A stretch of 64,000 nt of DNA, taken from NCBI GenBank assembly GCA_000708835.1, contig DF237413.1, positions 10,927 through 74,926 of the forward strand, written 5' to 3'. Below are positions 38,281 through 57,563 of the stretch, piece by piece. Under the pieces are notes generated by a model. It was not told the DNA's origin. It made no database searches and saw nothing but the letters and a program-made list of their open reading frames with translations. Within the stretch, counting starts at the first letter, position 1, and every line of letters starts with the position of its first letter. This DNA is from Klebsormidium nitens. Taxonomy: Eukaryota > Plantae > Klebsormidiophyceae. Made by a program: the position numbers and the translations under genes.

Positions 38281-39299
38281 GCCGCAGCGCAGGACTAGCT
38301 GAGGTTACGGTGGGGGATCCCTCATGTAGGTTGTGAATAGCCAACAACCCTCATGACTTGAGACGAGCTGGTGGTAAAACTGACAGTGGTAGGCGAAAGA
38401 GAAGCAAGGTCGATAGAAGTACATGTAGGAGCTCCGCAAGCATACCTGTAGTGCTCGTAGGCAGACCTGCCCTATACTTGTGTATGATCTCATGATAGTA
38501 TAGACGAATTGAATGACGTAGCGTACGGGCAATTGATCATCATTCGGATGCCAGATGGCATGTTGGCAAATGTACGCAATTCGATCATTGGCCCGGACGT
38601 GGCGCGGCCGCGATCGATCAAGCATCATGGGCGGTTTAATTAACCATGCATGGCATTGATGCGCGCACCTACTTGTCAATACCGCGCCGCCATATCCTGG
38701 TCATTGTCGCGTGAAGTAGCCTGCACGCGGGCGGCTTTATCATGGGCACGCAGGCGCGGCCATGCTTATACTGATTTGTACATAGAGCCATCGGCATGCG
38801 CCTGTTAAATTGTAGACCCGACCCGTCGGCCATGCACGTACCGGCCCTCACTCGAAACTGCGCGATCGGATGCATGCCGCGTGAGATCATGCTTATCGGA
38901 ACAGCTATAAGCGGCCTGCACTGCAAGGTACCAATGGCCAATTCGTACTCGCAGCGCTTCACATTTAATATGATTGCCTGATCGAATTGCGCCGTTGCTT
39001 CCAATGGGATGTAGCATATTCTGCAGCCGCAATGATATGCATGCAACGCGCAGGCCCCGGGCGATTCGAGGACATCCGCTTGAAAATGCGGTCGGATGCA
39101 CTCGTGAAGTACCCCACCATGATGAAGAAGTTGTGCGTATCCAGTATACAATTGTAAGCCGCCAGGCTCGGATGCGACAAAATCGTGTCCAGCCACCTAG
39201 ACATAATTAGTAACAAATTTCAGGCTTTATTCAACGCAGTTTAATGGTCTGCAAACGCAGAACGTCTATAGAAAGGTCGGAACCGTTTCGACGGAAAGC

Positions 39300-42200
39300 C
39301 TAGAGGCTCTTGAACAAGTCCTTTGCGGCAGCAATCGTGGCATCGACGTCCGCTTCCGTGTGCGCCAGCGACGTGAAGCCGGCCTCGTATTGTGAGGGCG
39401 CGAAGTAGTGTCCCCTCTCGAGCATGCCCCGGTGGAACTTGGCAAACTTTGCGGTGTCGCTCTTCTTGGCGTCCTGGAAGTTGTTGACCGGGCCCTTGCA
39501 GAAGAAGAAGCCGAACATGCCCGAAATGTGGCCCCCGCAAATGTCGTGACCCGCCTCCCGGGCCGCGTCCAGCAGCCCGTTGATCAACCGGCCCGTGATC
39601 CTGCAAAAGAAAGGAACGGTCGGTGATCAGGCAATTTTCGGAGTGATATGAAGTGGAGAACACTCGACGCAGTCGTTACTGAGAGGCTCTGTTTGATTCT
39701 GATTGCATCTCATCGGAGCCTTGGCCGGGTAGCGCTGCTTAGGCAACCAGACCAACTACCACAACGCCAAAATCTCAACCCCGCTTGAAGCTTGCCTTGG
39801 CAAGCAGGACAACGACCAGAACCGATTGCTGGCCCATGGACTCGAAAGACTGATCGCTTTTTCGAGGTCTGTCTGGCACACGCCCACGAGAACCACTACT
39901 CTTCCGCATTTGTCATCCCCACCTCACAGCAGCATACACCGGCAACATCAACCCCTACTCCCAATCCAAATATGCTGCTTGCTTTTCTTCAGGGCAGCTT
40001 CCGAACAACGACTCCTAACCCGTTCCTCGTCCTGCCTATTGGCCAGGTCGGCCTTCCTTGCCCCAGCCCCGCCTGAGCCTCACCTGTCTAGCTGCTCATA
40101 GCTGCCCGGCCGTTGCAACCGCTCGAGCGTCTTGATCCCCGAGATCATGGCGAGCGGGTTGCCGCTGAGCGTGCCCGCCTGGTACATGGGCCCCGCGGGC
40201 GCCACCATCTCCATGATCTCCCGCCGCCCGCCGTACGCGCCCACCGGCAGCCCGCCGCCGATGACCTTGCCCATCGTCGTCAGGTCGGGGGTGATGCCGA
40301 AGTGCTCCTGCGGAAAACAAGGGGAACGTCGCTGTGAGACGCGTCTTTTGAAACCTAGGAGAAAGACACGAGAGTGGCTTGAGAATATTGTTATTGGTTT
40401 TGTTAGTGAGGTGGGTCGCCCAGGTCGGACGCCATGCTGAGAGGCTGACGGTTACCGCGGCTTTCCGCCGCCGGAGTGGATGCGTTGGACTGCAAACCAA
40501 ATGTGTTTTTTGCCATCCTCGGTGTCATACTAGCCAGCGCGCGGTGCCTGTTTCCGGCAGACATCCTGATGCGCAGGGCTCGCAACGTTTCTCGTGACGT
40601 GCTTTCATGATTGGATGCGACCACTTGTCCTCAAGATTCCCAGCGTCAAAGAGCCAGCACGAACCTCCACTATCCTGATGCCAGCTCAGTCCTGGTCTTG
40701 CGAAAAGGAGAACCCCACGAAACAATGTGATATGTGCTCTGTCGAGACCAGAGTGCTCGAAGGTAGGTGCCACCCGTAACTGCTTGTTTCCTGAAAACTG
40801 CTACCTTAGGAAACGCAACAAAGCAGATTGCAGCGAAAATCGCAACCCATTCCAACTTGCGGTTCGGCTTGTGGGCACCAGTTACGGCCCCCCTACACCA
40901 ACTCCGAGTGGAATTTTTGATTCCGCACCGCTAGCGCGTAAAAGCTGTTTCGGCGTCACCTCCCCGAGGGCGTGCTGACTAGTTGCGCATCCCTGAGCTT
41001 GCGGCCCTCACCTGCGCCCCCCCGTAGGCTATCCTGAAGCCGGTCATGACCTCGTCGAACACGAGCAGCGCGCCGTCCTCCTTCGTCAGCTCCCGCAGCC
41101 CCTCCAGGAACTCCTTGTCCGGGATGATGAACCCTGCAACACATTATTGGCGTGAGAGGGCGGAGAAATACACCCTGCAACTTATCCACATGAACCGCCA
41201 CAGCGAGCGGAGATTTTCCGAGAGCTCTGACGGCAACATAAAATTGTCCGCTCAAGAAGGCAGGAATGGCAGAAAAGGACTGCACAGCAACCGGACTCGG
41301 CCTTGAAGCTCGCCCAGCTACATGCTAACTACTTCTGTCTCAAACCTGGTTGCCTATGACAGTTCCGTCGACTGTCTCTTCCAAGCTCACAATCAGGAGT
41401 AAGCTATGGCAAACTCATTTAGAGGACAGTGTGTCTGATGGTTTCATGCTTGGCTTGACTGCTGATCCAGGAGGGCTAGGTGAACTTCTGAGAGTCAGGT
41501 TCGCTGATGTTGTGGCCAGTGCCTTACAACTGAGACAGCACCGACAATGATGTGTGCTTTCGTTGCCTCTAACCAGGGGATAAAGTCTGACAGGGTGAAG
41601 AGGGGGTAAAATCAGATAATGTCACGTCAAGCCTTCACACAATCAGACTACTCGTTGTCACCTGCCACCCCCTATCAGAACCTTGATTCAATCAGAACCT
41701 CAGCATAGGCTGGGAGCAGCGGAGCTGATTCCCCAGTCAGTCCTCCACGAGCGGACCCAGATCTTGTACGACTAGAGGCGCCCACCAACCAGTCGCCACA
41801 GGACCCTTCTAACCCCCACCACGGGCAAGTGCCTTGACCGCTCTATTCTGAGTTCCAGGCTCAGCAGAGCAGCCCAAAAAGTGTCTGGTCAGTGGACTCG
41901 ATAAGACAACTGTCTGCGGAACAGTCGCCTGATAATCCACAATTGAATCAGCCTAATAACAGTCTCGGGCAGAACATGGAACTTTGCGGGTGCGGTGCGT
42001 TCCTGACCTGAGTTGCCCACCACTGGCTCCAGCACCACCGCCGCGATCTCGCCCTTGTGCTGGCGGAAGATCTCGCGCACACTCTCCAGGTCGTTGTACT
42101 GTGCTACCAGCGTGGCTGCCGTTGCGGCCTTGGGCACACCGGGGGAGTCGGGCAGGCCCAAAGTGGCGACACCGCTGCCGGCTTGCACCAGGAACGAGTC

Positions 42201-45200
42201 TGCACAACACCAGGGCCAGGAACTTTGGAGCTGTCCAGGAAAGAAAGTAGTAAGAGAACTCGTAGTTGCAGGAAGAAGGTCAAGAGGGTAGGAGCCCTGT
42301 AAAAGCCTATGAGTGAACTGTGATCTCAGCCGCGTTGCGGAGGTTGACCCACTCATGGGCCAGCATAGACCAGCGACACGTTTCGCCTGATGCAATTGGC
42401 TTCCTGTTTGGGTTCTGGTGGACGCGCCTGGTGGCGATTCCAACGCTTAGTTGCCAAATCCTCATGAGACGATTCTTCCGTGCAAGTGCTCTACTCTGAG
42501 GTATAGAAGCAGCGGCCAGCACTGCTGGTCCAAGAAGCTTGTGTCATCAGAAGCGGAAGATCCAGACTTTTATGAGACTACCGAGGATGGCCTCCCTGAG
42601 CTTCCCTCTCGCAGCTTCGCTCAGTGATGATTAGCTGCCTTCATGCTGGCCTCTTCTGCTATTTGAAAAATTCACTTGCCCGACTTCTGACATTCGGATG
42701 CGGCCCACAGTAGGTGGTGATGTCAAGACCCTGAAGTTGGCCTGCTCCATTCACCGACAGCTAAGCGTGCGGTGCATATGTAGATTGTGTTCTGAAACAG
42801 TGTGAAAATTTGTCACAGGCTGACTAAGCTGCAGCCCTTGCCCACCTTACAATTACTGACCTCACCATCACTGACATCGTCACCACACAATTGACCTGGC
42901 AACCAGGACAAGCAGAGAAACTCTATTTGTACAATGATTCTCTCTGCAATCTGGGCAAGTCAGTGCAGAGCGGCTTGACTCATACCGTTGCACCAAGCAC
43001 ACGGGTTGTATTCGCTTCAATGCCTCGTGAAACTCTCAAACTGTGCTCAACGGAGTGTCATTCTCGTATTAGAAACCGTGGAGCTTGTGACTGACCTGCG
43101 TGGCCGTGGTAGCAGCCCTCGAACTTGAGGACCTTCTCGCGGTCGGTGAAGGCGCGTGCGAGGCGCAGCATGCCCATGCACGCCTCGGTGCCGCTGTTGA
43201 CAAAGCGCACCATCTCCACGCTGGGCACCGCGTCAATCACCATCTGCGCCAGCACGTTCTCCAGAGCGCACGGCGCACCAAAGCTGGTGCCCTTCTGCAG
43301 CTGCTCCGTCAGCGCAGCAATCACCTGGGCGGAAGGAAAAAAGGCTCAACGGCTTTAGTTTTTGGGCTGATTGAGCATCGGCTGTAGGAAAAGTTGCGAA
43401 AGGTGCGAAAAGTGGCTTTCTCTGATATTGCAAGAATTTGTAAGAAGTCGCACTGAACTTGGATAGAATTACATCATGGAGTGCAGATGAGGGAGGCGTG
43501 CAGCCAGCTGATGACAAAGTGCAGGTCGACCGAACAACAGTAAGTAAGAACTATATAGCCCCAAGATAGTTTTCTTCGCTTCTTGTGAGGAAAAGAGCAC
43601 AAGCCTTTTCTAGAAATTTTCAGAACTGCAGAGAGTCCTGTGGGTTTGGACACATTGTTCTGTGAAAAGCCCTGGCCTTGAAAAGTGGTGGTGTGGGTTC
43701 AAAGAGGGTTTACTTGGTTCTTAAGCTGGTTTGGATCCAAGCCAAACAGGCAGAGCGCCAGCAAAATTGAGGGAAGGGGTGAACTTTGTTGGAGCAAGTG
43801 CCAGCATTGTGTGCAGCATTGTGCCCAATGGAACCCCGAAAAATGTCCCCAAGCAAATATGTCCCTGACCCCGAGAACTTGGCAAAAAGATGTTTTCAAG
43901 CCAGGAGAGAATGATTGGTTACCCCTTGAGAATGGACAACCTCAATTACTAAGAAGTAAAAAGGAAGTGTTTCTTTGCAGAATCTCACTACAGTAACAAA
44001 TTAACATTGCTCTTTTCCAATTCTCCCAAACACGGAATTCAAATTGACTGGGCCCAAAGCGAACAAAGGCAGATCAGTCTGAGATTGGTGCATACTAAAA
44101 ACAAGCAAAGAAAAGAGGGGACTCAAAAATGTGATGCTGACTTTGTTCCGACAATTAGCAACAGCATCATAAACCCTAATGCTGACTCAGTGGCGCCGGC
44201 TCACAGCTTCTCACCTCGTCGTCTGCGTGGCCAATAATGGCCGGCCCCCAAGAGCCCACATAGTCCACGTACTCGTTGCCGTCCACGTCCCACGAGTGAG
44301 ACCCCTTGACACGGTCAAACACAATGGGCTGGCCCCCAACGGACTTGAACGCGCGCACCGGGGAGTTGACGCCACCGGGCAACAGCTCCTGAGATCAAAA
44401 GGACACAAGAGCAATGCTGAGCAGGATTTTTTCGCATGACAAGAGACCGTCAGAATTCTCCCAGCCATCGCTTATGGGCCTTGTGCATCATTAGAACCCC
44501 TTTAGAAAAGGAGCGGACAAGGGCAGCAATTTTGCTACCTTCTAGGCATCATAGAAATCGGGTTGCGGCACTTCGCACATCCAGTTGTTTGCACCTAAGA
44601 TTCCAGGGGGTCACAGGTAATGGTAGATGCAACCACACGACGCTGCTTCGAGATTCTCTGCCCAGGTAACCCTAACATGGTGCCGACAAGGGACGAGTCT
44701 GTGTCCCCTGTGTCTATGCAGGGCACCAATTGGCCCTGATTGCATTAACCTCGGAAAACATTTTGGGTCAGTCTAACGTTGGGATTGCACCTCAGTTTTG
44801 GCAAGTGTCAGGATACTATCACAACATCGAGCTTGTTACAAGCTGTGGTTCGCTCTCCTGCATTGGTGCCACAATCTAATGATGAGGTTGGCAGCTTGCC
44901 ATGTCAAAGTCAGACATTGCTAGCTGCTTACAGTTGGTAAACGAACCCGGGTGATTGGGCTAGCTTTACATTCTCAAACATCATGTCTGACGCCACTCGA
45001 TATTTCTCTGTTAATGCTGCCAAAGTAACTAACAAAAGCTCCCTGGAAATCAGCAAGACAGGTGTGTCCACATCACATCACCAATTGCTCCTGCTTTTCC
45101 TGTGAGACTTGTACCGCTACTTAAGCTTGGGAATTCACACCAAAACCCTTACGACTCGCACAGATTCCAGACGCCACTGCATTTCAAAGACGCCGTCCTC

Positions 45201-45485
45201 GAAATAATGCCAGAGATGCCTTGCCCCGGAAAAACATATGATTACCTTGGCGGCCTTGAAGATCTCATCCGACTTAGTGGTGCTGTAAACCTGCCTCTCT
45301 GTGGCCACCGCCATGGAGAACCTGCTGGCGCTTCTCTTTGAAACAAGTCCCTCAATGCTAGCAATTCTGCTGCTGCTTGTGGGGAGAGCGACAAACGGCT
45401 GCACGGTCGACTTCTGGGAGCACTGTGAGGCTCCAAGGAGAGAGGTGCTGGTGCAGCCACGCAGGGCGAGGGTGCTGGAGGCCAT
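39300..45485 (-). CDS. GSA: Glutamate-1-semialdehyde 2,1-aminomutase, plastid precursor (hemL/GSA)
   Basis: Seven exons: transit peptide [10 protein letters not shown]…; [19 protein letters not shown]…[16 protein letters not shown]; [11 protein letters not shown]…[10 protein letters not shown]; EPVVGNSG; [11 protein letters not shown]; [21 protein letters not shown] (PLP lysine); [15 protein letters not shown]…LFKSL*. Confidence 0.98.
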
Positions 45486-46498
45486 GCCGAGGGGCAAACT
45501 TGGTGCAGAGAAAAACAAAAACCCACTTCCCAGGAAAAGGCGATGATGTTGCTTTGCTTCCTCTTATCTGCGCCCTGTTGCTAAGAAGGGAACAAAGAAA
45601 TTTCTTCCAACTTCGAACCAACAATTTGCCGAAGGCTTCAGCAGGGACGACTCGGGCTTCTGATTCAAAGTTTGAGAGCGCTAGCTTTGGAAGCGCCTGC
45701 GATATCCAAATCTTGGACAGCCAATCAAAAGCCAGATTCCGTGCACTTTTGCTAAAGCATCGGACGGCGAAGCTGTCTCTCGAAGTAAAAGCAGTCGGCG
45801 ATCGAGGGCTTTGCAAGCTTAGTGACATCGTATCAGTGCTAACCGTCCGATGCAGGGCTCCCCTTACCCATGTTCACGTATGCACTGGGGGAATCATGCG
45901 TTCTAGAGCTATAGCTGATTGCTGCAACATGCATATACCCAGTGTATTGCCAGCGCATGATCGACTATAAGTATAGTGATCGACTTGATGTACTGTGTAG
46001 CTAGGCAAAAGTTCCGGACTTAAGTTGCACATGATCTTCTCACATGCACGCCACCTACTTCATGTTCCCGGCCGCGTGCGTGTTCCACAACTATATTTCA
46101 TTGTCAATCATATTAGCTCCCCGTTGCATGATGAATCATGTTAATAACATGCATACTGATATAAGTATCCAAGGCCTGGCGGCGTCCCCGTGTCGGACAA
46201 TTCGATTATGCGATGTACATCTGAAAAAATTGAACTTCATACGTTGGAGTGGTGATGCAAATCCCATCGTGCGAGTTGACTAAACTGCCCGGGCCTGCCA
46301 GCCTTGGCAGGGGATCTGAGATCCAAACATGTATGTTACAAACCTAGCTCTGGCTAGCTTGTTGCCATCCTGCCGCTTGTCATACGAGAGTATAACAGCG
46401 CCAGCTCCTATGATGCGCATCAATCAGCTACTAACGGGTTAACTAGCCAGCAGCAAAGGTTTGACTTACTAACGTAAATATTAAACTGTTTTAGAAGC

Positions 46499-48955
46499 TC
46501 AAAATCTATGCGACCTAACATATAAGTGAGTCGCGGAGATGACTCCGACCGAAACTGCCCCTGCTAAGGCCGTCCAGCCGAGAAGACTCGCGCTTGGTAG
46601 ACTCGGAACGAAAGATACTATCTTCGCTTGAGCTTTCGTCTGGAGCATGTCTTCCAGCTTCCCTAATCGCACGTCTAGGCTTGCGAGCTTTGCGTCGGTT
46701 GCATCAGCGACGCACCTAAGGGACCTAAGCTCCTTCAACAGGGTCTTTAAGTACCAAGCGTCCGAGTCCTCACCCACAATCTCGTTGTCGGAGAAGGCAT
46801 CGTCTGGGAAGGACTCTTCCGTAACATCGAAGTACTCCTCCGAGTCGCTGCTATCGCCAAACATGCCCACTTTCTCGCGGCATATGACATTTAGCATGTG
46901 CAGCCACTCCACAAAGGTCTTCTTCGCTTGCTCCCCCATGAAGTTTTCCATCATGGCTGTAAACGACAGCGAAGGCAGCAGGTTAGAGAAGGGGAGGCCT
47001 CTTCCCGGAGTTCGGAATGCCAAACGATCGACATCTAAAGTTGGCCCGAAAGAAACATTGGTGCTACGATGCGGAGAGGCCGCCTTTGTAAACGATGACT
47101 TACCACTTCTCACTTGTAATTTTGACTTATTCACATCGAGCTTGCAGCATGAGAGAAGATCACCAGAGTTAACCCAAGTACTAGTTTGCTTACTGCTGTA
47201 AGGATTCTTCTTTCAATCGATGCTCCTGTTATCGTCCAAGAATGTGCGGACAGGAGTGGGAATAAGGGCCAAACCTATTTGTGCGGGTATCACGTTGACC
47301 GGGGCTACCCGCAGACAGCCCCAGTCGCACCAAAGAATTTCATCAATTGAAACCTTTTCGTTGCTTCGCCTAATACACCTTGCGCTTCTTGTTCATACAT
47401 ATGATGAAACGGTCCTCAACGAAGAACGGACCGAGTTTTGGAATTGAAGGCGACTCAAAGAAGGGCAAACGTACGCGTTCATACAGCACATCCATTTTCA
47501 ATTCAAGGGACCACCAACTCCGAGGTGAAGCCGACATTTCGAAATCGAGTCATTACGTGGTCAGGCGGTGTGCTTACATCCGAGCGGCCAGAGCGCGCAC
47601 TCCATTCGTGCCACCATGATGATGGCCGTCCCCGGTGTGTCCCCGCCCGCCGGCCGCAGCTCCACTTGGCCCCCCGTCTTGAAGCGGTCCCCCCCCGGGA
47701 GGTCCAGCCGCGGCACTGACTCTACGATGTACAGCTCCTTTGTCTTGTGCGTGATGGCCTGCTCCTCGCGCACCCGCAGCGTGTCTGCGCCTGCGACAGC
47801 AAGGGTATGACTGATATCCAATCGTCTGTCAAATTGCCTGTATCGACATCAAAGGTCTCCCTTCAATTTGAATCTTAAGTCTGTCTTCTTCTGAGCAAAT
47901 CCCTACGAGAAGTTCCGTCCAAATTCTTCTAGCCTTCCAACAGACGTCAAGCCCTCCGCGAAACTTGGCTTGAACGGTTGCTCCCACAATCAGCAAGATG
48001 GATCCTGGTGTAGTGCACCGACATATCCGCACCGATATTCAAGGGTCAACATGTGGTGTCCGCACACCTTGTTCATCTGAGAAGTTGCTGAAAACAACTG
48101 CGTCAGCCCATCTAGCACATCAACAAGAACTGTGGTCCAACCCAACCATCATGGCAAGAGCATCAACAACCAGAACGCTGATGTGGAGATTTCGAGATGT
48201 TCGGACGCACAGTAGTCACATCAAAAGAGACACCAGCGTATGCTCTATCAGTGCCACTTGGCGGTCTCCGCAGCAGTTCTCACCAACACACTTTGCGACA
48301 ATGGCGGGGGCGTTGACGGGCGTCTGGAAGGTGACCACCCTCGTATCATCCTCACTCCAGTTGGTCGCCCGGGCATCAGCATCCCCATTCACCTCAGTGT
48401 GATACCTGAGTGGCAGAAAGCAGGGTCAACAACTCTGCTCAAAGGCACCTCTCCTTTTCACAAGCTCTGGTCTCCTTGCGCAGAGTAGAAACTTCTTCGC
48501 AATTGGTGAGATGTTGGCTCAGCTGCTGGGGCCCCTTCCTATCTGGCTGAGGCCAAAAAGCTTCTCAAACATGTTGACCCCATGCTCAACAACGCACCCG
48601 TTAAGATTTGAAGTCATGCAAGCAATGGTATTATCTGCTCATTTCATGCAACATAACAATGGGAAATACGAGCCATGCTAAAAGAACAGGCGAAGCAAAT
48701 TTGAGCTTACCGAGTAAGGAAGTCTTTGTCGAAGTACAATATCTGAAACACCACCTGCACAGCGTCCAGGATGGGAGTTGAGAGGTAACACTAACAGTAG
48801 CGTTAAGCATGATGGATGACTGATCTAGTGCCCATTTCAATTTGCTGCATGATCTTGTGTAAGAAAAGGCCCCAAAGCCAGTGACTCGTCTCTAAGGCAA
48901 CGCTCACCTCTGGCGGGACGCCGCTGATCTCAGCGGTGAACGTGAGCTCCTTCAT
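46499..48955 (-). CDS. VASt (StART-like) domain protein with FFAT-like motif, short coiled coil and C-terminal tail anchor
   Basis: Phase-compatible exons 48908-48955, 48711-48754, 48284-48405, 47578-47790, 46499-46956: MKELTFTAEISGVPPE|VVFQILYFDKDFLTR|…NWSEDDTRVVTFQTPVNAP…|ADTLRVREEQ…VESVPRLDLPGGDRFKT…ECALWPLG|SMMENFMGEQAKKTFVEW…EEYFDVTEE…WTALAGAVSVGVISATHLYVRSHRF*. The VASt assignment is by motif recognition, not an HMM search. Confidence 0.75.
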
Positions 48956-49296
48956 GGCAGGAAGGCGCTTTACGAAAGGGGTTTCTTAAAGAATTGTCCG
49001 AGCTGTGCAGCTATTGTTCCTTCCGTGTGTCCTGCCCTCTAGCATTTAACACAATTGCCTCAATCGCAGCGGCTACTTCTGTAAACGTCCCACATCTCGC
49101 ATGCCCTTTGAAAGCGAAAAGACGAGACAGACCACAACCTAAAAGGGCTCTGCCAGCCCTCTATTTCATATGCTGGGTGCTGCTCTGCGCTACCACGTTG
49201 AACTTGTAGTACAGCGGCCAGCCGCAATGGCGGCCAGACAGGAAAGGCCCTCCTGAGTCCTGCTCTTGTTTCGTTCCTGGAGTTTTGCTTGACCGC

Positions 49297-49304
49297 AAAC
49301 CCTA
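49297..49304 (+). promoter_or_regulatory. Telo-box (AAACCCTA) in the VASt/SEC14 divergent spacer
   Basis: Exact AAACCCTA between the two outward-facing ATGs (48955 and 49693). An 8-mer can occur by chance. Confidence 0.35.
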
Positions 49305-49692
49305 AATTTGTCGACATCGGAACAGGGCCTTTATTTCGACTTCGATACAATTGTCGAAAGCGACGTAGGGAGATAGGGCGGAGCAGCTGCACGATACGAA
49401 AGGTGGAAATCTTTGATCAACAGAGGGGAAGGATGCCTGATGGTCGGATGACATCCGCTATATGGGAACATTCACTAGCTGTTTGTTACAGGTGAATCGT
49501 GATTCAGAAGGTGCTTCCACAATCCAAATTGCCAGCACTGTTCATGACGTCCCCATGCATGGCCGCCAGCAACAGATGGTGAAGTGCGACGTGCATGTAA
49601 AATTGTGCGGCATCTTTGGGCGCCTGTTGACTCTCTCGCCTTCTGCTTCTCCTTAGAGATCTGGAAGCACCCAGTGAACATTAAGCCAGGGG

Positions 49693-52600
49693 ATGGCAGC
49701 AGCGCTGGGTGGCCATACGTGCGTCCAAGCGAACCGCTGGAAAGTTTGCTTCAAAGTGCATTTATGCTCTGAGTCTTAGGTTGCGGAAGGAACGTAGAGA
49801 GGTTTGTGCACTTGTCTACACCCTCGCAGCATTATGCGACATTGGTCTACGAGGGTTTGTCATTTCTTGGATTGCACACATCGGGGTGCTCATATACTGT
49901 TCGTTGGCAAGTACCATATGCATAGGCCTAAGGTTGACTCCTTATCGGGCGGCTGAACCGGTTGTTGGAAGCAATCTGTTTGAGAAAGGAGGACACGTGA
50001 GCTTTAGGAAGGCCCTCTCTGTTGGCCCACATTCAGCCAGATCCTGCTGCCCAGCAACGTGGATTCCAGGCGGCCTGATTGCGCAATGGCCACCTCTACT
50101 TTCTCCTGCCCGGACCTGACTGACACACAAAGTGTAAATCTGGAGGCCATGAGAAGCAAGCTGGCAACCCGTGAGTCCCATGCTTGTGCAGACAACTTGC
50201 AGTCCTTTCCTTCCCTCTTGTCAAAGGGACAGCGGCCACAAATGCTCCATGTGGTGATGCTTAGCAGGTGCTCCTAGGGTGTAACTCAAGTAGTGGCAAT
50301 AATTTGTCGTTGGGTCATTTAAATGGCTTGCGGGATTCTGATAAGGCTGGAGGAATCAAACAATCCTGCAACTCCCTCTTTGGCCCACATTTGTTGGTCA
50401 ATTCTTTAGGACCGGTTCAGTTGATGGGGCTGCATGGCATTTGGGTGGCGTCAAACCCCCTGCACGGCTGCTGTCGATGATCATTATGCAACTGGGTGGG
50501 GCAAGTGCTGAAAAGGGGGTGGGTAAACCCTTAAAAACACAGCACCCTGTGGGGAAAGATTCTCAATAATCATCGTTGAGCCAAACCTTAATGACATCTA
50601 ATCTTCTTCTTTGCAGTTGATGAGGCCTTTCAAGCATCTTTTGAGGTGGGTTTTCCTTCCATCACCTGCCTTGGGATGGCTTCAATGACCTCAGTCCACC
50701 GATGGCCCCGTTTTTGGCCCATCCAATTAAGCTCCAGTTGGCAACGTGCCCAGCTTGGATAGCAGCATTCCAATGTGTGAATTCTTGAAGCACGTCACTA
50801 GAGTGGGCCCCTTGCTGTCACTTGAGGCTCCTCTTTCTGTCCTTACTCTAGCGCCGTCCCTGTGGCAGGTCCTTGCGCAGGGCGAGCCTGACAGGAGCCT
50901 GATGCGCTTCTTGTGGGCCAGGGAATGGCACGTGGACAAGGCATTCAGCATGGTGAACACCACAGCCCAGCCTCCCTGTTAGCTTCCTGACAATGGACAG
51001 TCGTGCTCTGCTTCTTGAAAGATTGTGTATCACTCCAGCGTTGACTTCCAAGTAGACGAGGGAGCTCTGATGGACGAACTCCTTGCTGTTCTCAGACCAT
51101 TCATGTCGACCTGTACTGCCCCTTGAAAGGAGAGTTGAACCCACTTACCTCTTTTCAAGTCTATCCGAGGCACTTGCGATAATCTTGCCCTCCTTGCACC
51201 ATTGCATTTGACTTGCAGCTTAGCAAACTACTCTGTCTTGCCACCCTAACTAAAGGACCATAATGTATTTTACAGTTGGTAGACTGTCTCAAGTGGCGAC
51301 GAAAGTATGGCACCGACACAATTCTTCAGGTGAAGCTTGGTACCAGATTGCAATGGGCGTTTTCTTGTGTCAAGTATACGGACAAACCCTGCGCAGACTT
51401 GGCTTGTTGACGTGCCTACAAGGGCGAGTGTCTTTGTTGGGGCTAGAAGCCTCAAACTGTGAGCTCACATGCCTTCACATGTCTTTGCTAACTTTGAAAT
51501 CTTGAGTACATTCCCACAAAGGTTCCTTCTGCCTTTCATACATCCAAGGCAAGGAGGCGGCCTTCCGAAGGATTCCCCTGATGAGCCTTCGGCTTTTTGC
51601 AGAGGCCCCTGGAAGAAGCGAAAATGCGCGCCATTCGAAATGGTTTTCACGTGGGAATGTCCGGCTATGATAAGCAGGTGCGTCCCGTTCCAGAGCTGCG
51701 GGCACAGGTGTTTATGGAAAGCTCGACTCTTTTCCCATGTGAAGAAGATTGAGCTTGCTGAGCTTTCATCTCCGTTTTCAAGCCATTTGCTGGACCTGTC
51801 TGTGCAGGGCCATCCGGTGATCTTTGTCAAAGTAGGACCCAGCAAGTGCGGGGGAGCCACGGTGAGTCATACCTCGACACTGCTCGCTGGGATCGGACCT
51901 TGCACTCTTAAGCCGCAGTAAGGGCTTTATTGTGCCTCAAGGATAGCCGCCTCCGTGATGACTCTGGCTGTACCCTATGTTTACGTTATGCTGCTCCTGC
52001 TTCGCTGAAGGCAGGTTGTCTGTGTGCAGGTGGACGACTATGTCAAGGCACACGTGCAGTTCAGCGAGTGGCGGGACCGTGTGTTGTGTGTAAGTCGCAC
52101 ACTGCCTTACTGAATCCTCTGTCATCAGATCTCAATGCAGAGCAGATGAAGCGTTCTTGACTTCTCTTGGCTGTCACATCGAGTTGGCTGCCCCGCGCAG
52201 CAGTCCGAGGTTGCAACTGCTGAAGTTCCAACAAGGGCATGCTTGAGCCGCAAACGACATTCTTGGAACGCGCATGTCACGTGCATCTGTCTCTGGAGAG
52301 AGCCTCTACTTTCCTCACGCCTTCACCTCGCCTTACGGCCGGTCCATTGTTGCACGTCGAGAGGTCCCAAATCTCATTCTCTCTCCCCTCGTTTCCTGGT
52401 GCCATGGTCGAGACGTTTGCGTTGACGCCCGTGCGCGTGTGCTGCTTGCGCAGGCGGAGGCGAGCAAGCGGTGTGGGCGGCCCATCACGACCACGACGCG
52501 CATCCTGGACTGCACCGGCCTTACGCTGGGCCACCTCGCCAACCTCAACGTCAGCGCTTTCTCCCGTCGCACCTTGTCTCATCTCTTTCTGTCTTGCTGG

Positions 52601-53803
52601 AGTGCAGTGCTTGTCGATATAGAGTGCGGCTTCACCGAGACAGCCGTCAGTTGAGTACTTCGTTGCAGCTGGTGCAGTCGTGTCGTTTTTTATTCGGTCA
52701 TGTGCGGTGTGCAGCTGCTGAACGCGATGTCCAAGATTGACGAGTTCAACTACCCGGAGAAGGCCAACGCGTACTACTTGGTCAATGTGCCGTACGTCTT
52801 CACGGCCATCTGGAAGGTTCGGCCTCCGCCAACATTGCTAGAGGGGCCTCGAGTCCACTCTCTCTTGGACATGTCATGCTTCGCAGGACATGTGCAGAGG
52901 CGGTCAGACTGGCCAGTAGGACAGGCAGCTCTGATGGGACAGGTCCGGTGTGACGACTTTGGAGTGGTTGCGTTGGCCATCTGGAATTCCAGAGCACTTA
53001 CAGGTCCATGTCTGACACATCTTGACGGTTTTATGTCCGGTTCCAATTTGAACGCTCCTGAGTGTGACCAGCTCGGCGTGACTTCTGGCAATCCAAATGA
53101 CACTTGTTACGGCCTGCCTGTTGAGTGTCTTGCGATATGAAAACCTCACAGCATGCTTCCATGTGCAGGTTGTGAAGCCGTTGCTCCAGCCGCGCACGAT
53201 CAACCGGGTGAAAGTGCTGTCCGGGAACGGGCTGGACACACTGCGACAGGTGAGCACTGTTGGGCCCGCACAGATGTGACAGCATGTCCCTGGATGAAAA
53301 GCAGGCCGAGGAATTCAGAGCGGTTGGCTTGCAGACGCCACGTTTTGTTTCAAACTTGATGCATAGCAGACATACACTTCCATGTTGAATTGTTGAAAGG
53401 TGGCTGGCGGCGTTGCCATTGTTGCGTGTGAGGGGTCTTTAGGGCAGCCTCCTTGGTCGACGTTTCCCACTTCGATAGCTCTGAGCGGGGCCGCTCTTTC
53501 GTGCCGCAGTTCATCGACGAGGAGCACATCCCGGTGTTTCTGCGCGACCCCAAGTCCAGCGTGGACTGCACCAGCCTGGACTGCTCGCTGCACCGCCGCT
53601 TCTGGGCCTACCTCCAGGAGCAGGCCGCCGCGGCGCCCCCTGCTGCGAGGCAAGAGGAGGCGGCGGCGGCAGCGGGGCACGCACACGTGGAGACGCCCAA
53701 GAAGCGGCATCACCGGTTCAGCCTCAGGAAAGGCCCCGAGGAAGGGAAGCAAGCCGCAGACAGCGGCGCGGTCGCGCCCGAGCCGAGCCACGGGGCGCAC
53801 TGA
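49693..53803 (+). CDS. SEC14/CRAL-TRIO lipid-binding/transfer protein (plant At1g55840/At5g47730-type, from memory)
   Basis: Exon chain MAAALGGHT|VNLEAMRSKLAT|LDEAFQASFE|VLAQGEPDRSLMRFLWAREWHVDKAFSM|LVDCLKWRR…|…GMSGYDKQ|GHPVIFVKVG…|…HVQFSEWRDRVLC|…RILDCTGL…|…IDEFNYPEKANAYYLVNVPYVFTAIWK|VVKPLLQPRTINRVKVL…|FIDEEHIPVFL…HGAH*. The two tiny 5' exons are less certain. Confidence 0.9.
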
Positions 53804-54794
53804 TGTGAGCGGGCCGGCAGATGCCGAGGCGTTGTAAATTGTACCATACGAGGTAGGAAAGAGGTATCAAACAAATTACTGGTCTGGGCACTCAAGGTGC
53901 CCAGGCCGGTTGATTATTAAGAAGGCTGCTTGTGAGTGCGTTTATGCGAGCGGATGCTTCGCCCTTGCATGATTTTTTGGGACCACTGTTGAGTTGGAGA
54001 TATAAATTCAGGGCAGATGACCGAACTTGTCATCCTGTATATGTAGCTGCCGAAAAGGGCCATACGTATTCAGTCTGCTTTTCACACTGGATGATTGCAA
54101 AACGACTTGAATGTGATAATACCATGCCGGCCAGCTACCTAATCGATCGAAGACCTTATATGCCTACATATGAGCGCAATATATTATATTAGGCTCGCAA
54201 TCGGATCTGCTAAGTTTTAATGTAGTGGCTGCCATGCAACTTGGCAAGCTCCAATCTGGACGGTGCCAGACGAGGTAGTATGTGATCGCCGCAACATGCG
54301 CCGCGGTCATGGGCGGCTAGTTTGTACACGTACATAGTACTATATATGCATGATGCGCGAAACATCTGGCAAGCCTATTATTCAAGTTTATATCAAATTC
54401 GAGGACAGTGAACCCGGCGAATATATCAGACCCGTCGAACAACCAATTATCTATCCAAGAAACCACAATATATGGACTGATTGCGTTCAACGTATGGCCG
54501 CGGGGCCTGCATGCAATGATAATTAGAGAAGATTTTCTAGGCGGCCGCCTGCAAAGTGGCCGCCCATTGATCAAATTGCCAGCCCGTGCATGGCCCCGCG
54601 CACCTACACAAGCTACCTACGGTGGGTCCCGGCCGAGTCAACTCCGACTCGAATCGCAGCGAAAATGTGGGACCCGGTATCAAATTTCGTCAGTAGTACC
54701 GGCGGTCCACGTTACGACGACTCGGACTTCTGTAACATGTACGCAACGAGTACTCTCAGCAATTTCCTCGGCCGTAACTGAGTGTCATAATATT

Positions 54795-55003
54795 NNNNNN
54801 NNNNNNNNNNNNNNNNNNNNNNNNNNNNNNNNNNNNNNNNNNNNNNNNNNNNNNNNNNNNNNNNNNNNNNNNNNNNNNNNNNNNNNNNNNNNNNNNNNNN
54901 NNNNNNNNNNNNNNNNNNNNNNNNNNNNNNNNNNNNNNNNNNNNNNNNNNNNNNNNNNNNNNNNNNNNNNNNNNNNNNNNNNNNNNNNNNNNNNNNNNNN
55001 NNN
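54795..55003. other. Assembly gap (209 N)
   Basis: Run of N characters. ORFs spanning it are artefacts. Confidence 1.
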
Positions 55004-55081
55004 TCAAGTTCCACATGTATGTTGCGTGGGAAAGCTTAGTCAATTGCAATTCTCACTGTCAATTGCAATTATACATCTTGA

Positions 55082-55506
55082 GTCACGCTGAAGTGGCACC
55101 CGGTTAGGTATTTTAGAGGCACTTTGGCTGGGGGGTTTGAAGCCCCACCCCCCTCCTGGCCTTGCCTTCACAAAAAAGGTCAAGGCCCCGGTTCAAATGG
55201 TCACTATCCGGGCAAATTTTCTGGACAAAACTTAGCTGGCACCGTCGTATGCATAGATTCGCCCCTTTTTCACGTTGAAAAGTGCTTTTCTGTTGCATTC
55301 ATGGTCTAGAATCAAGCTGACCCGTGGGACAAAAGATGTAAAAGCAGCACCGTCATAAAAGCATGTTCTTCAGCTGAAATCCGGCTGGGGCCTCGCCCCA
55401 AGCCAAAGGCGACAAGGCCCCCCCCCCCTCCCCACCTTCGATTGGCTGAAGCAACCCAAGCCCCCCCCCCAACAGAATACCTAAGGGGGTGCCACTTCAA
55501 AGTGAC
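55082..55506. mobile_element. MITE-like element with ~31-bp terminal inverted repeats
   Basis: gtcacgctgaagtggcacccggttaggtatt (55082-55112) versus the reverse complement of 55476-55506, gtcactttgaagtggcacccccttaggtatt: 4 mismatches in 31. Poly-C/G tracts inside. No clear TSD. Confidence 0.6.
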
Positions 55507-55860
55507 GGTACCTTTAAAGTAGGCCGAGCCAACGGCCCTCAGTATCATTAACACACCGTACATCATCTAATTGTTGGAAACGTACAGGCAAAACTTGAAA
55601 ACTACCGTACATGGCCGCCTGCCCACAGTAAAGTACAGTTGATTGAAAGTCTAAGTACATGCTCAACCATCGGCTCATTCGTTAATCTAATGTTCGGACG
55701 ATCGCCATCATTCGCTAAGCCACACATCTAATGCCAAATTTGTCGACAATCCTCGAACGCAGCGACTGGGCTGCTTATGAAGCATCCCTAACGCACCCAT
55801 GCGTTAAGTAGCATCAATCTGGAATCTAAGGAGAGTGGCAGCCAGCGCGGCAGGTGCTCC

Positions 55861-57563
55861 CTACGCAGTTTCTGTTTCTCCCGTCTCCCGTTCTGCTTTG
55901 GCAGCAGATGCATAAAAGAGAGAGGCTGCCACCGGATCCCCCAGCTCGTGCTCCTGCGCAAACATCTGCGCTTTGAAGCGGTTCCTTTGGGTGGGCGGCT
56001 GCGCCTCGATCTGGTATGCTTGCTCGTACAGCAGAAAGACATAGCGGTGTCGTCCAACAGGAGGAGTCGGACCACTGTAAGGGACCACGTCCGTGCCTGC
56101 AAAGGAAGCAATTGCAAACTGGTTTACTCTCCAAGCAACCCCCCCAATCGTGCAGATGCACATGTCCTTCCCCGACATACATGGACGAAGAGACTGTTTG
56201 GCATCGTGCCTTCCCGCACTCTTCCAATTGTAAGCGAGAACGTCCAAACCTTCATAACAAGAAATTCTCAGAACTAAAGCGGGGAGGCACTAACGAGGAA
56301 GGCCTGGAAGGCCCACTTCGCATGACATACTTCTTGACGAGACATGCCTCATTCTTTCACGAGTACTTTGCAGAATCTGCAGGAAGCCTGGAAGAATAAA
56401 GCGCCGGGTGCCGTTGAATACCGTAGCCCGCTTTGCCAGACAAAGTGAGGAAAAGTGAAGGAAACACTGAAAAGCATATGAACACCAAAGCAAGCCCATC
56501 ACGAATCTGCCGCCTCTGAAAACAAGACCTGCCAGACCCCCAGAGAGGAGAAGAGATGCGCAGGCTCACCCGCGGTGGCTTCCTGTCCCCCCGGGATGTT
56601 GGTGACCAGCCAGTGCAGCCACTCCGCCTCGCTGGGGGCCTCCGGGGAGGGCGCGTCAGGGTCCACCAACACCTGTGCACGCAAGCCATACAGGATCCAC
56701 GCTGCAGGCAGGTGATGTGACAGCACTGCAGATGATGTAACTTGTAAGGGGCCCAGTCCATAAATGTGATCGAACTGTACAATTTAGCAGCAGCGGCCGC
56801 AGGTTGCTTTGAGCCCCAGCTGAGGAATCTACATACCAAGGGAATCCTTGAATGTCAGTCTTAGTTTATGCCTGCTTCTGCGCGACTCACCAGTGTATAC
56901 AGGTCATTCTCACTCCCTCCTACTCGGACGGTTGGGAACACCTCCGCCTCCGAGGGGCTGAGCTCCGCCCCGCTCTGGATGGGCATCCCCTCGTACGCAA
57001 TGCTGAGCGCCACGCTGGGCGTGAACGCGTCCAACATGTCCGCAATGAGCGACACCGCCGTCGCATCAAAGCGGGAGATCGAAACGTTGAGAGTACCAGC
57101 CTCACTAGAAATGTCACTGCGCCCATCACGACTCACTGCAGGGAGGATATAGCGCTGTCAGGGCCTAGCCCACTGCAAAGAACCTGAAAGAGCAAAATAA
57201 GCTTAAAAAAACAGAAAGGGGCTTTGTACTGACTCCACAAGGTCCTACTGCAGGTCTTCAACAGGTATTCAACAGCATTGGCACTGCAAATGCAGATTTC
57301 GACCACTAGAAGTTCTTTCTTTTAAAAAGCACTGACCATCCACAAATTGACAAGCCTGAGAGTGTCATTTTAGGAGCTGCACCAACAGAGCACCAACATT
57401 GTGCAGAAGGGCCTTTTGCTGGCAGCCCACCTGTTTGTACATCCCCCCTATCCGCCTTGCTGTCAGGCAGATTAGCTGGCGGTCCCGTGCCAAACAGGAC
57501 CAGCGTGAAGAAAAGGCACGCCACCAGCAGGCAAGCGAGACCGGAAAGCCGGCTGCGATCCAT
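55861..57563 (-). CDS. PEBP-3: MFT-like PEBP with an N-terminal signal peptide/anchor
   Basis: Exons 57431-57563, 56891-57135, 56570-56672, 55861-56096: [25 protein letters not shown]…; …[17 protein letters not shown]…GSENDLYTL|[34 protein letters not shown]|[26 protein letters not shown]…[18 protein letters not shown]…. Confidence 0.93.

Follow-up and report, generated by a model that had tools for sequence, protein, structure and literature searches.

Proteins of the VASt/LAM/Aster group are the main known non-vesicular sterol carriers at contact sites of the endoplasmic reticulum (ER). The characterised anchored members are ER-based and use a GRAM domain to find the partner membrane. In both the yeast Lam/Ltc proteins (Ysp2/Lam2, Lam4 and Ltc1/Lam6) and human GRAMD1a-c/Aster-A-C, the VASt domain (PF16016) is joined through a linker to one membrane helix at the C-terminus. 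Within the Streptophyta, VAD1 of Arabidopsis (PMC4082322, PMC5500287) likewise combines a VASt domain with a transmembrane (TM) helix and a coiled coil, and a 2014 survey recorded no VASt-alone proteins in plants. Here we analysed a 64,000-nucleotide (64-kb) stretch of the Klebsormidium nitens genome (assembly GCA_000708835.1, contig DF237413.1, positions 10,927 to 74,926; hereafter the window, whose numbering is used throughout). In it, the minus-strand gene KFL_004640090 encodes a small VASt protein that has no GRAM domain, carries an FFAT-like motif (FFAT, a pair of phenylalanines within an acidic tract) and is predicted to end in a C-terminal tail anchor. Judged from sequence, this combination is real and unusual, while its function is predicted only.

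The gene runs from 48955 to 46499 on the minus strand, with five exons of 885 nt in total that encode 294 amino acids, as read from spliced RNA contigs. The product has the same sequence as the annotated K. nitens protein P0007 (GAQ88852.1, hypothetical protein KFL_004640090, 294 aa; UniRef100_A0A1Y1IFN3, automatically named "VASt domain-containing protein"). Each exon piece was found in this protein at the expected offset, with junction codons CGG, GGC and TCC, and window positions 38499-56955 are identical to DF237413.1 49425-67881 of GCA_000708835.1. The gene is thus already annotated, automatically only, and a literature search found no publication that mentions both Klebsormidium and the VASt domain. 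For comparison we used related loci from a Logan assembly (L003) and from two Joint Genome Institute (JGI) metagenomes (L001/L002). The parts of the protein, all encoded on the minus strand, are as follows.

46871..48955, minus strand: lipid-binding domain of the VASt (StARkin) type, residues 1 to ~171, to which all five exons contribute (Pfam on the full protein)
46772..46870, minus strand: acidic linker, residues 172-204, predicted to be disordered (AlphaFold2 (AF2) coil, predicted local distance difference test (pLDDT) <50)
46817..46855, minus strand: FFAT-like motif, residues 177-189, made up of the flank DSSDSE (46855-46838) and the core EYFDVTE (46837-46817)
46613..46771, minus strand: long heptad helix with an unbroken repeat, residues 205-257 (AF2 helix 62-114 of exon 5)
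46517..46585, minus strand: single predicted C-terminal TM helix LLGWTALAGAVSVGVISATHLYV, residues 267-289 (hydropathy and AF2 helix)
46502..46516, minus strand: basic tail RSHRF, five residues, net charge +2

A Pfam search with the full protein returned VASt (PF16016) with an E value of 2.8e-11 and 44.4 bits, above the gathering score of 27 bits, residues 12-120 corresponding to profile positions 8-120. This bears out the N-terminal VASt domain that a preliminary description, made from the sequence letters, had put forward for checking with a hidden Markov model. When the exons were searched one by one, VASt was the best match each time and the sole match for most pieces, and the matches were colinear. 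In L001, where exons 2 and 3 are fused, the corresponding piece matched VASt profile positions 14-67 with an E value of 2.7e-4. Language-model features of exon 4 placed three VASt clusters nearest, followed by START and PRELI. The profile matches place KFL_004640090 in the VASt family. AF2 modelling of residues 1-175 from a shallow three-species alignment gave a mean pLDDT of 37; the predicted order of elements (a strand, a helix, several strands and a long C-terminal helix at residues 146-173) is compatible with a helix-grip, START-like fold.

The characterised relatives place a GRAM domain ahead of VASt, and such a domain was tested for here. The reading frame is closed by a stop at 48988-48986, 30 nt ahead of the ATG, as had been noted beforehand, and the transcripts of a divergent upstream neighbour begin at 49521-49538. 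An upstream extension that could add a GRAM domain is excluded jointly by the 5' ends of the transcripts, this stop and the divergent neighbour, and with VASt occupying the protein from its first residues the N-terminus offers no space for one. A GRAM/PH domain ahead of VASt is therefore absent by transcript 5' ends, reading frame and Pfam positions, in agreement with what the preliminary description had claimed. Lacking this domain, the protein does not have the GRAM-VASt architecture of LAM, Aster and VAD1 proteins. KFL_004640090 shares with the Lam/Ltc and Aster proteins the order of VASt domain, linker and membrane helix, and would share their cytosolic orientation and contact-site logic. 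However, it is much smaller (294 aa), starts with VASt at residue 1, and has a conserved FFAT-like motif, a long heptad helix, a less hydrophobic TM domain (TMD) and a dibasic tail. VAD1 differs from it in carrying a GRAM domain (residues 116-182) within an extended N-terminal region, in being about double the length, and in that no FFAT-like motif has been reported for it.

The VASt domain is, by the searches made here, very divergent. A bacterial START-like family, DUF2505, also just passes on the full protein (27.4 bits, residues 7-157), no pairwise similarity to VAD1 was detectable among the retrieved matches, and phmmer/PDB sequence searches with the pieces, with a profile and with the whole protein gave no Lam/Aster match, returning chance matches only (Myb, designed propellers, lipocalin). 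Given the low-confidence model of the fold (pLDDT 37) and the lack of a Lam/Aster match in the PDB, the ligand of the domain is a guess, which counts against any firm naming of sterol as cargo. Alternatively, the protein could act in membrane-anchored form as a lipid sensor or regulator and not as a carrier, its divergent VASt pocket binding a lipid or other hydrophobic ligand while the coiled coil and acidic linker recruit signalling partners, an arrangement already put forward for the cell-death regulator VAD1. We consider this improbable. The divergence just described, including the DUF2505 match, the missing PDB similarity to Lam/Aster and the lack of relatives found beyond the lineage, would suit a sensor, as would AtVAD1, whose VASt domain is needed for regulation of cell death and defence and for which no transfer activity has been shown (PMC5500287). 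On the other hand, the VASt domains that have been tested biochemically (Ysp2, Lam4 and the Asters) bind and move sterol (PMC4463742), and an anchor, a flexible linker and a terminal lipid-binding domain form the geometry typical of a contact-site carrier.

For the C-terminal module, an AF2 model of exon 5 of low confidence predicts a helix at exon residues 3-30, coil at 31-61 (pLDDT <50), a helix at 62-114, a further coil and a helix at 127-148. The exon thereby encodes the C-terminal VASt helix, the acidic linker, the coiled coil, the TMD and the tail. Within the helix at residues 205-257 a single heptad register is kept over 47 residues, with L, I, V or M at 9 of the 13 a/d positions, and there is a weak Pfam match to the TRPM_tetra coiled coil. 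The coiled coil proposed earlier is accordingly present, and the heptad helix is modelled as a probable dimerisation region. The hydrophobic helix and basic tail described with it were also recovered: the best 19-residue Kyte-Doolittle window (1.61) starts at residue 267, the next best (1.29) lying inside the VASt domain, and RSHRF follows the helix directly. Tail-anchored proteins were defined by a single TMD within ~30 residues of the C-terminus, no signal peptide and no other TMD. In KFL_004640090 the TMD lies five residues from the end and the N-terminus is the VASt domain itself, and on these sequence features the protein is tail-anchored.

Which membrane holds the anchor can be approached through published targeting rules. 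The TMD is moderately hydrophobic, with a grand average of hydropathy (GRAVY) of ~1.5-1.6. In yeast, TMDs of ER tail anchors have GRAVY values >1.75, and in mammals a less hydrophobic TMD with a moderately positive tail favours mitochondria (PMC5450235). For plants, the rule for tail anchors of the outer mitochondrial membrane (OMM) calls for a moderately hydrophobic TMD and a tail of 3-8 residues containing two basic residues that are adjacent or one apart, with no Glu after them (PMC4154396, Marty et al. 2014). For one class of tail-anchored proteins this dibasic rule is both necessary and sufficient for OMM targeting, and several members of the class also reach plastids or peroxisomes (PMC4154396). 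In its expanded form the rule fits two of the three orthologues, namely the window tail RSHRF (an H-R dibasic, then F) and KAHRFGS of L001.

Other observations weigh against a membrane other than the ER. The L003 tail, RTQRF, breaks the dibasic rule with two residues between its basic residues, and the rules for tail anchors were worked out in yeast, mammals and angiosperms rather than in algae. In addition, every characterised membrane-anchored VASt protein (Lam/Ltc, GRAMD1/Aster) resides in the ER by way of its C-terminal helix (PMC4463742, PMC4442815, PMC5823543). The same precedent, together with the VASt, TM helix and coiled coil of AtVAD1 (PMC4082322, PMC5500287) and the deviating L003 tail, recommends a different explanation, in which KFL_004640090 is a minimal ER-anchored protein of the Lam/Aster type that reaches its partner membrane through VASt itself or through a protein partner. 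In favour of a non-ER membrane, the moderate TMD (GRAVY 1.5-1.6) and short basic tail point to mitochondria or another non-ER membrane in yeast, mammals and plants alike, and without a GRAM domain an ER-anchored protein would have no evident means of recognising its partner membrane. We regard the ER-anchored explanation as somewhat unlikely when taken by itself. By analogy with these rules, the probability that the anchor sits in a non-ER membrane is about one half.

The remaining element is the FFAT-like motif. A core EYFDVTE at 46817-46837 behind an acidic tract had been reported in the preliminary description; it stands exactly there, with DSSDSE as its flank. The linker around it is strongly acidic, with a net charge of -14 over the 38-residue stretch 172-209 (residues 29-66 of exon 5). 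The motif falls in predicted AF2 coil (pLDDT <50) and N-terminal to the tail anchor, so that it is predicted to be non-helical and cytosolic. Position-weighted scoring was carried out with the penalties of Table S2A of Mikitova & Levine 2012 (PMC3261905), with all positions of the protein scored and a cut-off of <=2. DSSDSE-EYFDVTE was the best site of the protein with a score of 2.0, made up of one unit each for Y2 and V5 and none for the flank, whose index of 4.5 is optimal, as are E1, F3, D4 and E7. The position-weighted check that had been proposed for the motif is therefore passed, but only just. In composition-preserving shuffles, scores of 2 or better arose in 0.14% of trials for exon 5 and in 1.6% for the acidic linker alone. 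About 76 human sequences reach the same cut-off, and motifs with a score of 2 supported targeting in yeast "at barely discernible levels" (PMC3261905).

Conservation of the motif was assessed in the related loci. Core and flank are the same in L003, L001 and the window, that is, across three close species. Relative to L001, the 13 motif codons SDSEEYFDVTEES have 8 synonymous and 0 replacement changes, while in the next 5 codons 4 of 5 are replaced. On these codon counts the FFAT-like motif is conserved under purifying selection and is more constrained than its surroundings. Conservation above the neighbours, a cytosolic location and a non-helical setting are the three further criteria set out in PMC3261905, and the motif agrees with them to the extent that prediction can show.

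Several considerations weigh against a function of the motif in binding VAP proteins. With Y2 and V5 each costing one unit the motif is borderline, exactly at the cut-off, and our implementation of the table reproduced four of seven published test scores and overshot the other three by 0.5. In VAP, position 5 of the motif is received by a small pocket (PMC8759595); we found no functional FFAT motif with Val at this position. Some chance FFAT-like matches are also expected in this genome, given multiple testing. Table S2A is nevertheless conservative, since the proven FFAT-like core of ACBD5, VYCDSME (PMC8759595), would score >=3.5 on it. No VAP gene lies within the 64-kb window. Taken together, the probability that the motif functions in VAP binding is, from its sequence, a little under one half. 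The borderline score of 2.0 also supports the ER-anchored explanation, in which EYFDVTE either binds VAP in cis, concentrating the protein at VAP-rich contacts, or forms part of a conserved, phospho-regulated acidic linker unrelated to VAP. That the motif core is more constrained than its surroundings speaks against this explanation. A reversed topology, with the anchor outside the ER and docking to it, is one of two comparably likely readings, an ER anchor being almost as likely.

The reversed topology is plausible by analogy with animal proteins. ACBD5 and ACBD4 share the order of modules of KFL_004640090, in which an N-terminal lipid-binding domain is followed by an FFAT-like motif and then by a tail anchor that ends in basic residues, and ACBD5 also has a serine-rich acidic tract and a Tyr at position 2 of its core (VYCDSME). 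ACBD5 is a peroxisome-ER tether of animals that has a non-ER anchor and binds VAPB of the ER (PMC8759595, PMC5450235). It differs in having an acyl-CoA-binding domain in place of VASt, and as the two are non-homologous the analogy is one of layout only. In feature space the cluster nearest to exon 5 was the ACBD5 family at 0.76, a value below evidence level and of use as a lead only. STARD3/MLN64, MIGA2 and PTPIP51 form a further set of comparable systems. STARD3 is alike in principle, being a StARkin sterol carrier with a non-ER anchor and an FFAT-type motif directed at VAP/MOSPD2 of the ER (PMC7705450). However, STARD3 is held in late endosomes by a four-helix MENTAL domain at its N-terminus and carries START at its C-terminus, and its motif is a phospho-FFAT that reads QFYSPPE.

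Following these examples, KFL_004640090 may be a contact-site lipid shuttle with a non-ER tail anchor that docks to the ER through its FFAT-like motif and VAP27, with sterol as the probable cargo. This is the reading we prefer, tentatively, and we give it clearly less than an even chance; the probability that a non-ER anchor and a functional VAP-binding motif occur jointly is about one third. The C-terminal tail anchor would hold the protein on its membrane with the remainder in the cytosol, and the ~50-residue coiled coil would probably pair two copies. The OMM is the best guess for the anchoring membrane, the plastid envelope or the peroxisome being possible as well. The FFAT-like motif, located in a flexible, disordered acidic linker of ~30 residues, would dock onto an ER protein of the VAP27 type through its major sperm protein (MSP) domain, possibly tuned by phosphorylation of the flank serines. 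VASt, at the free N-terminal end, would then move a lipid, probably sterol, between the two apposed bilayers. In this scheme we infer VAP binding, the anchor membrane, dimerisation and the lipid carried.

If true, the VASt fold would be used in both orientations, as START domains are (CERT versus STARD3). The full-text literature yielded no publication in which a VASt protein is credited with its own FFAT motif, and a paper from 2024 states that no VAP27 partner with a functional FFAT motif had yet been reported (PMC11631713). A small protein with one clean candidate motif is for that reason a convenient test case. The widest version of the proposal, which we think rather unlikely, is that of a first VASt/LAM carrier with reversed topology, anchored in the OMM, plastid or peroxisome, docking on VAP27 as an endogenous FFAT-VAP27 lipid tether of the plant lineage, and perhaps co-regulated with a neighbouring Sec14-like gene. 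The principle of a reversed topology is not new, as STARD3 and ACBD5 work in this way in animals. With a lineage-restricted gene, a borderline motif and a known principle, the proposal makes a good hypothesis for the bench rather than a surprise.

The gene model rests on RNA contigs from four public runs belonging to four studies, which were aligned to window positions 46200-52100 (5,901 letters). Contigs of all four runs have the joints 46956|47578, 47790|48284, 48405|48711 and 48754|48908 in common, and every skipped part reads CT..AC on the plus strand, that is, GT..AG for the minus-strand VASt gene. KFL_004640090 is a real, expressed gene, and its ATG and stop coincide exactly with the ends of the span 46499-48955 given in the preliminary description. 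The transcript is composed of the following parts.

48956..49268, minus strand: 5' untranslated region (UTR), ~313 nt; three runs have RNA contigs ending at 49262-49268
48908..48955, minus strand: exon 1, ATG to residue 16, the N-terminal edge of VASt; joint 48754|48908
48711..48754, minus strand: exon 2, residues 17-31 with a split codon, VASt; RNA joints
48284..48405, minus strand: exon 3, residues 31-72, VASt; RNA joints, and a Pfam VASt match (E 0.022) to profile positions 31-67
47578..47790, minus strand: exon 4, residues 72-143, VASt core; RNA joints, and a Pfam VASt match to profile positions 72-124
46499..46956, minus strand: exon 5, residues 143-294 and the stop codon TGA at 46501-46499; joint 46956|47578, and orthologues P0001 and P0002
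46235..46498, minus strand: 3' UTR; RNA contigs start at 46235-46289

Four short upstream open reading frames (uORFs) are located in the 5' UTR, with ATGs at 49169, 49102, 49095 and 49045 and lengths of 2, 9, 11 and 19 codons. All four stop upstream of the main ATG, and they may exert translational control. Contigs of low depth over introns 3 and 4 (e.g. 46927-47575 and 47762-48254) resemble unspliced precursor. A 30-nt in-frame stretch in intron 3 (48097-48068, minus strand), flanked by AG/GT and similar to a cassette exon, is unused, as the RNA contigs join 47790 straight to 48284. The window has a G+C content of ~52% and its introns are short.

In both orthologous loci no exon is missing and the exon order is unchanged; the splice sites are canonical, and a stop codon precedes the ATG in frame. 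Exon 1 is either identical or 94% identical in these two loci. The comparison with the window gave the following values.

VASt exons: 92-100% identical in L003, 80-100% identical in L001
Last exon: 89% identical in L003, 70% identical in L001
Codon differences from L001, four VASt exon pieces: 48 synonymous, 19 replacement
Codon differences from L001, last exon: 49 synonymous, 45 replacement

These counts indicate that the protein is under purifying selection, which is strongest on the VASt domain. They also bear on whether the gene could be non-functional, either as a mis-predicted model or as a decaying lineage-specific pseudogene. Its orphan state, with no homologues found beyond three close relatives, is what a pseudogene might show; yet splicing is identical in four RNA data sets, the frame is intact, the exon structure is kept, synonymous changes are in large excess over replacements across the three species, and the Pfam VASt match is above threshold. 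A non-functional gene is hence improbable in the extreme. In L001 (3347-3511) exons 2 and 3 are not separated by an intron, whereas K. nitens has one of 305 nt here, a presence/absence difference within the Klebsormidium lineage.

The distribution of the gene was examined with several searches. A word index of 5.8 billion clusters, queried with the last exon and the full protein, returned only two close orthologue fragments. A search of 1.84 billion representatives with a 70-residue profile of exon 4, a query length blind to distant VASt relatives, returned only the gene's own 79-aa fragment, in whose 90% cluster the annotated K. nitens protein sits, and three long repetitive proteins. The matches to the latter (P0004, P0005 and P0006) fell into short stretches, up to seven per protein, and are taken as spurious. 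Two scans of metagenome contigs found no relatives. The gene thus appears, from these searches, to be confined to Klebsormidium and its close relatives, more distant relatives being beyond the reach of the searches used. The exon-4 stretch DRFKTGGQVELRP resembles the repeat unit of P0004, P0005 and P0006 and that of designed beta-propellers (PDB 6tjd, 7awy; RFKTGxxIE), a likeness that is taken as chance.

The divergent neighbour of the VASt gene, arranged head-to-head with it, is a gene for a 337-aa CRAL_TRIO (Sec14-like) lipid-transfer protein at window positions 50086-53803 on the plus strand, transcribed from ~49521. Its 5' UTR is long, at ~565 nt. The transcript starts of the two genes are ~255 bp apart, so that two lipid-transfer genes have a shared bidirectional promoter region, from which they might be co-regulated. 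The divergent pair is kept in L001 and L003; synteny is expected among such close relatives and we claim no functional link from it. According to the deposited annotation, a gene of the PBP/PEBP (phosphatidylethanolamine-binding protein) family is located beyond the Sec14-like gene at 55861-56955 on the minus strand, making three consecutive genes with lipid-binding domains (VASt, Sec14-like and PEBP). On the other side, downstream of the VASt gene, the same annotation places a class-III aminotransferase gene at 39300-45485 on the minus strand.

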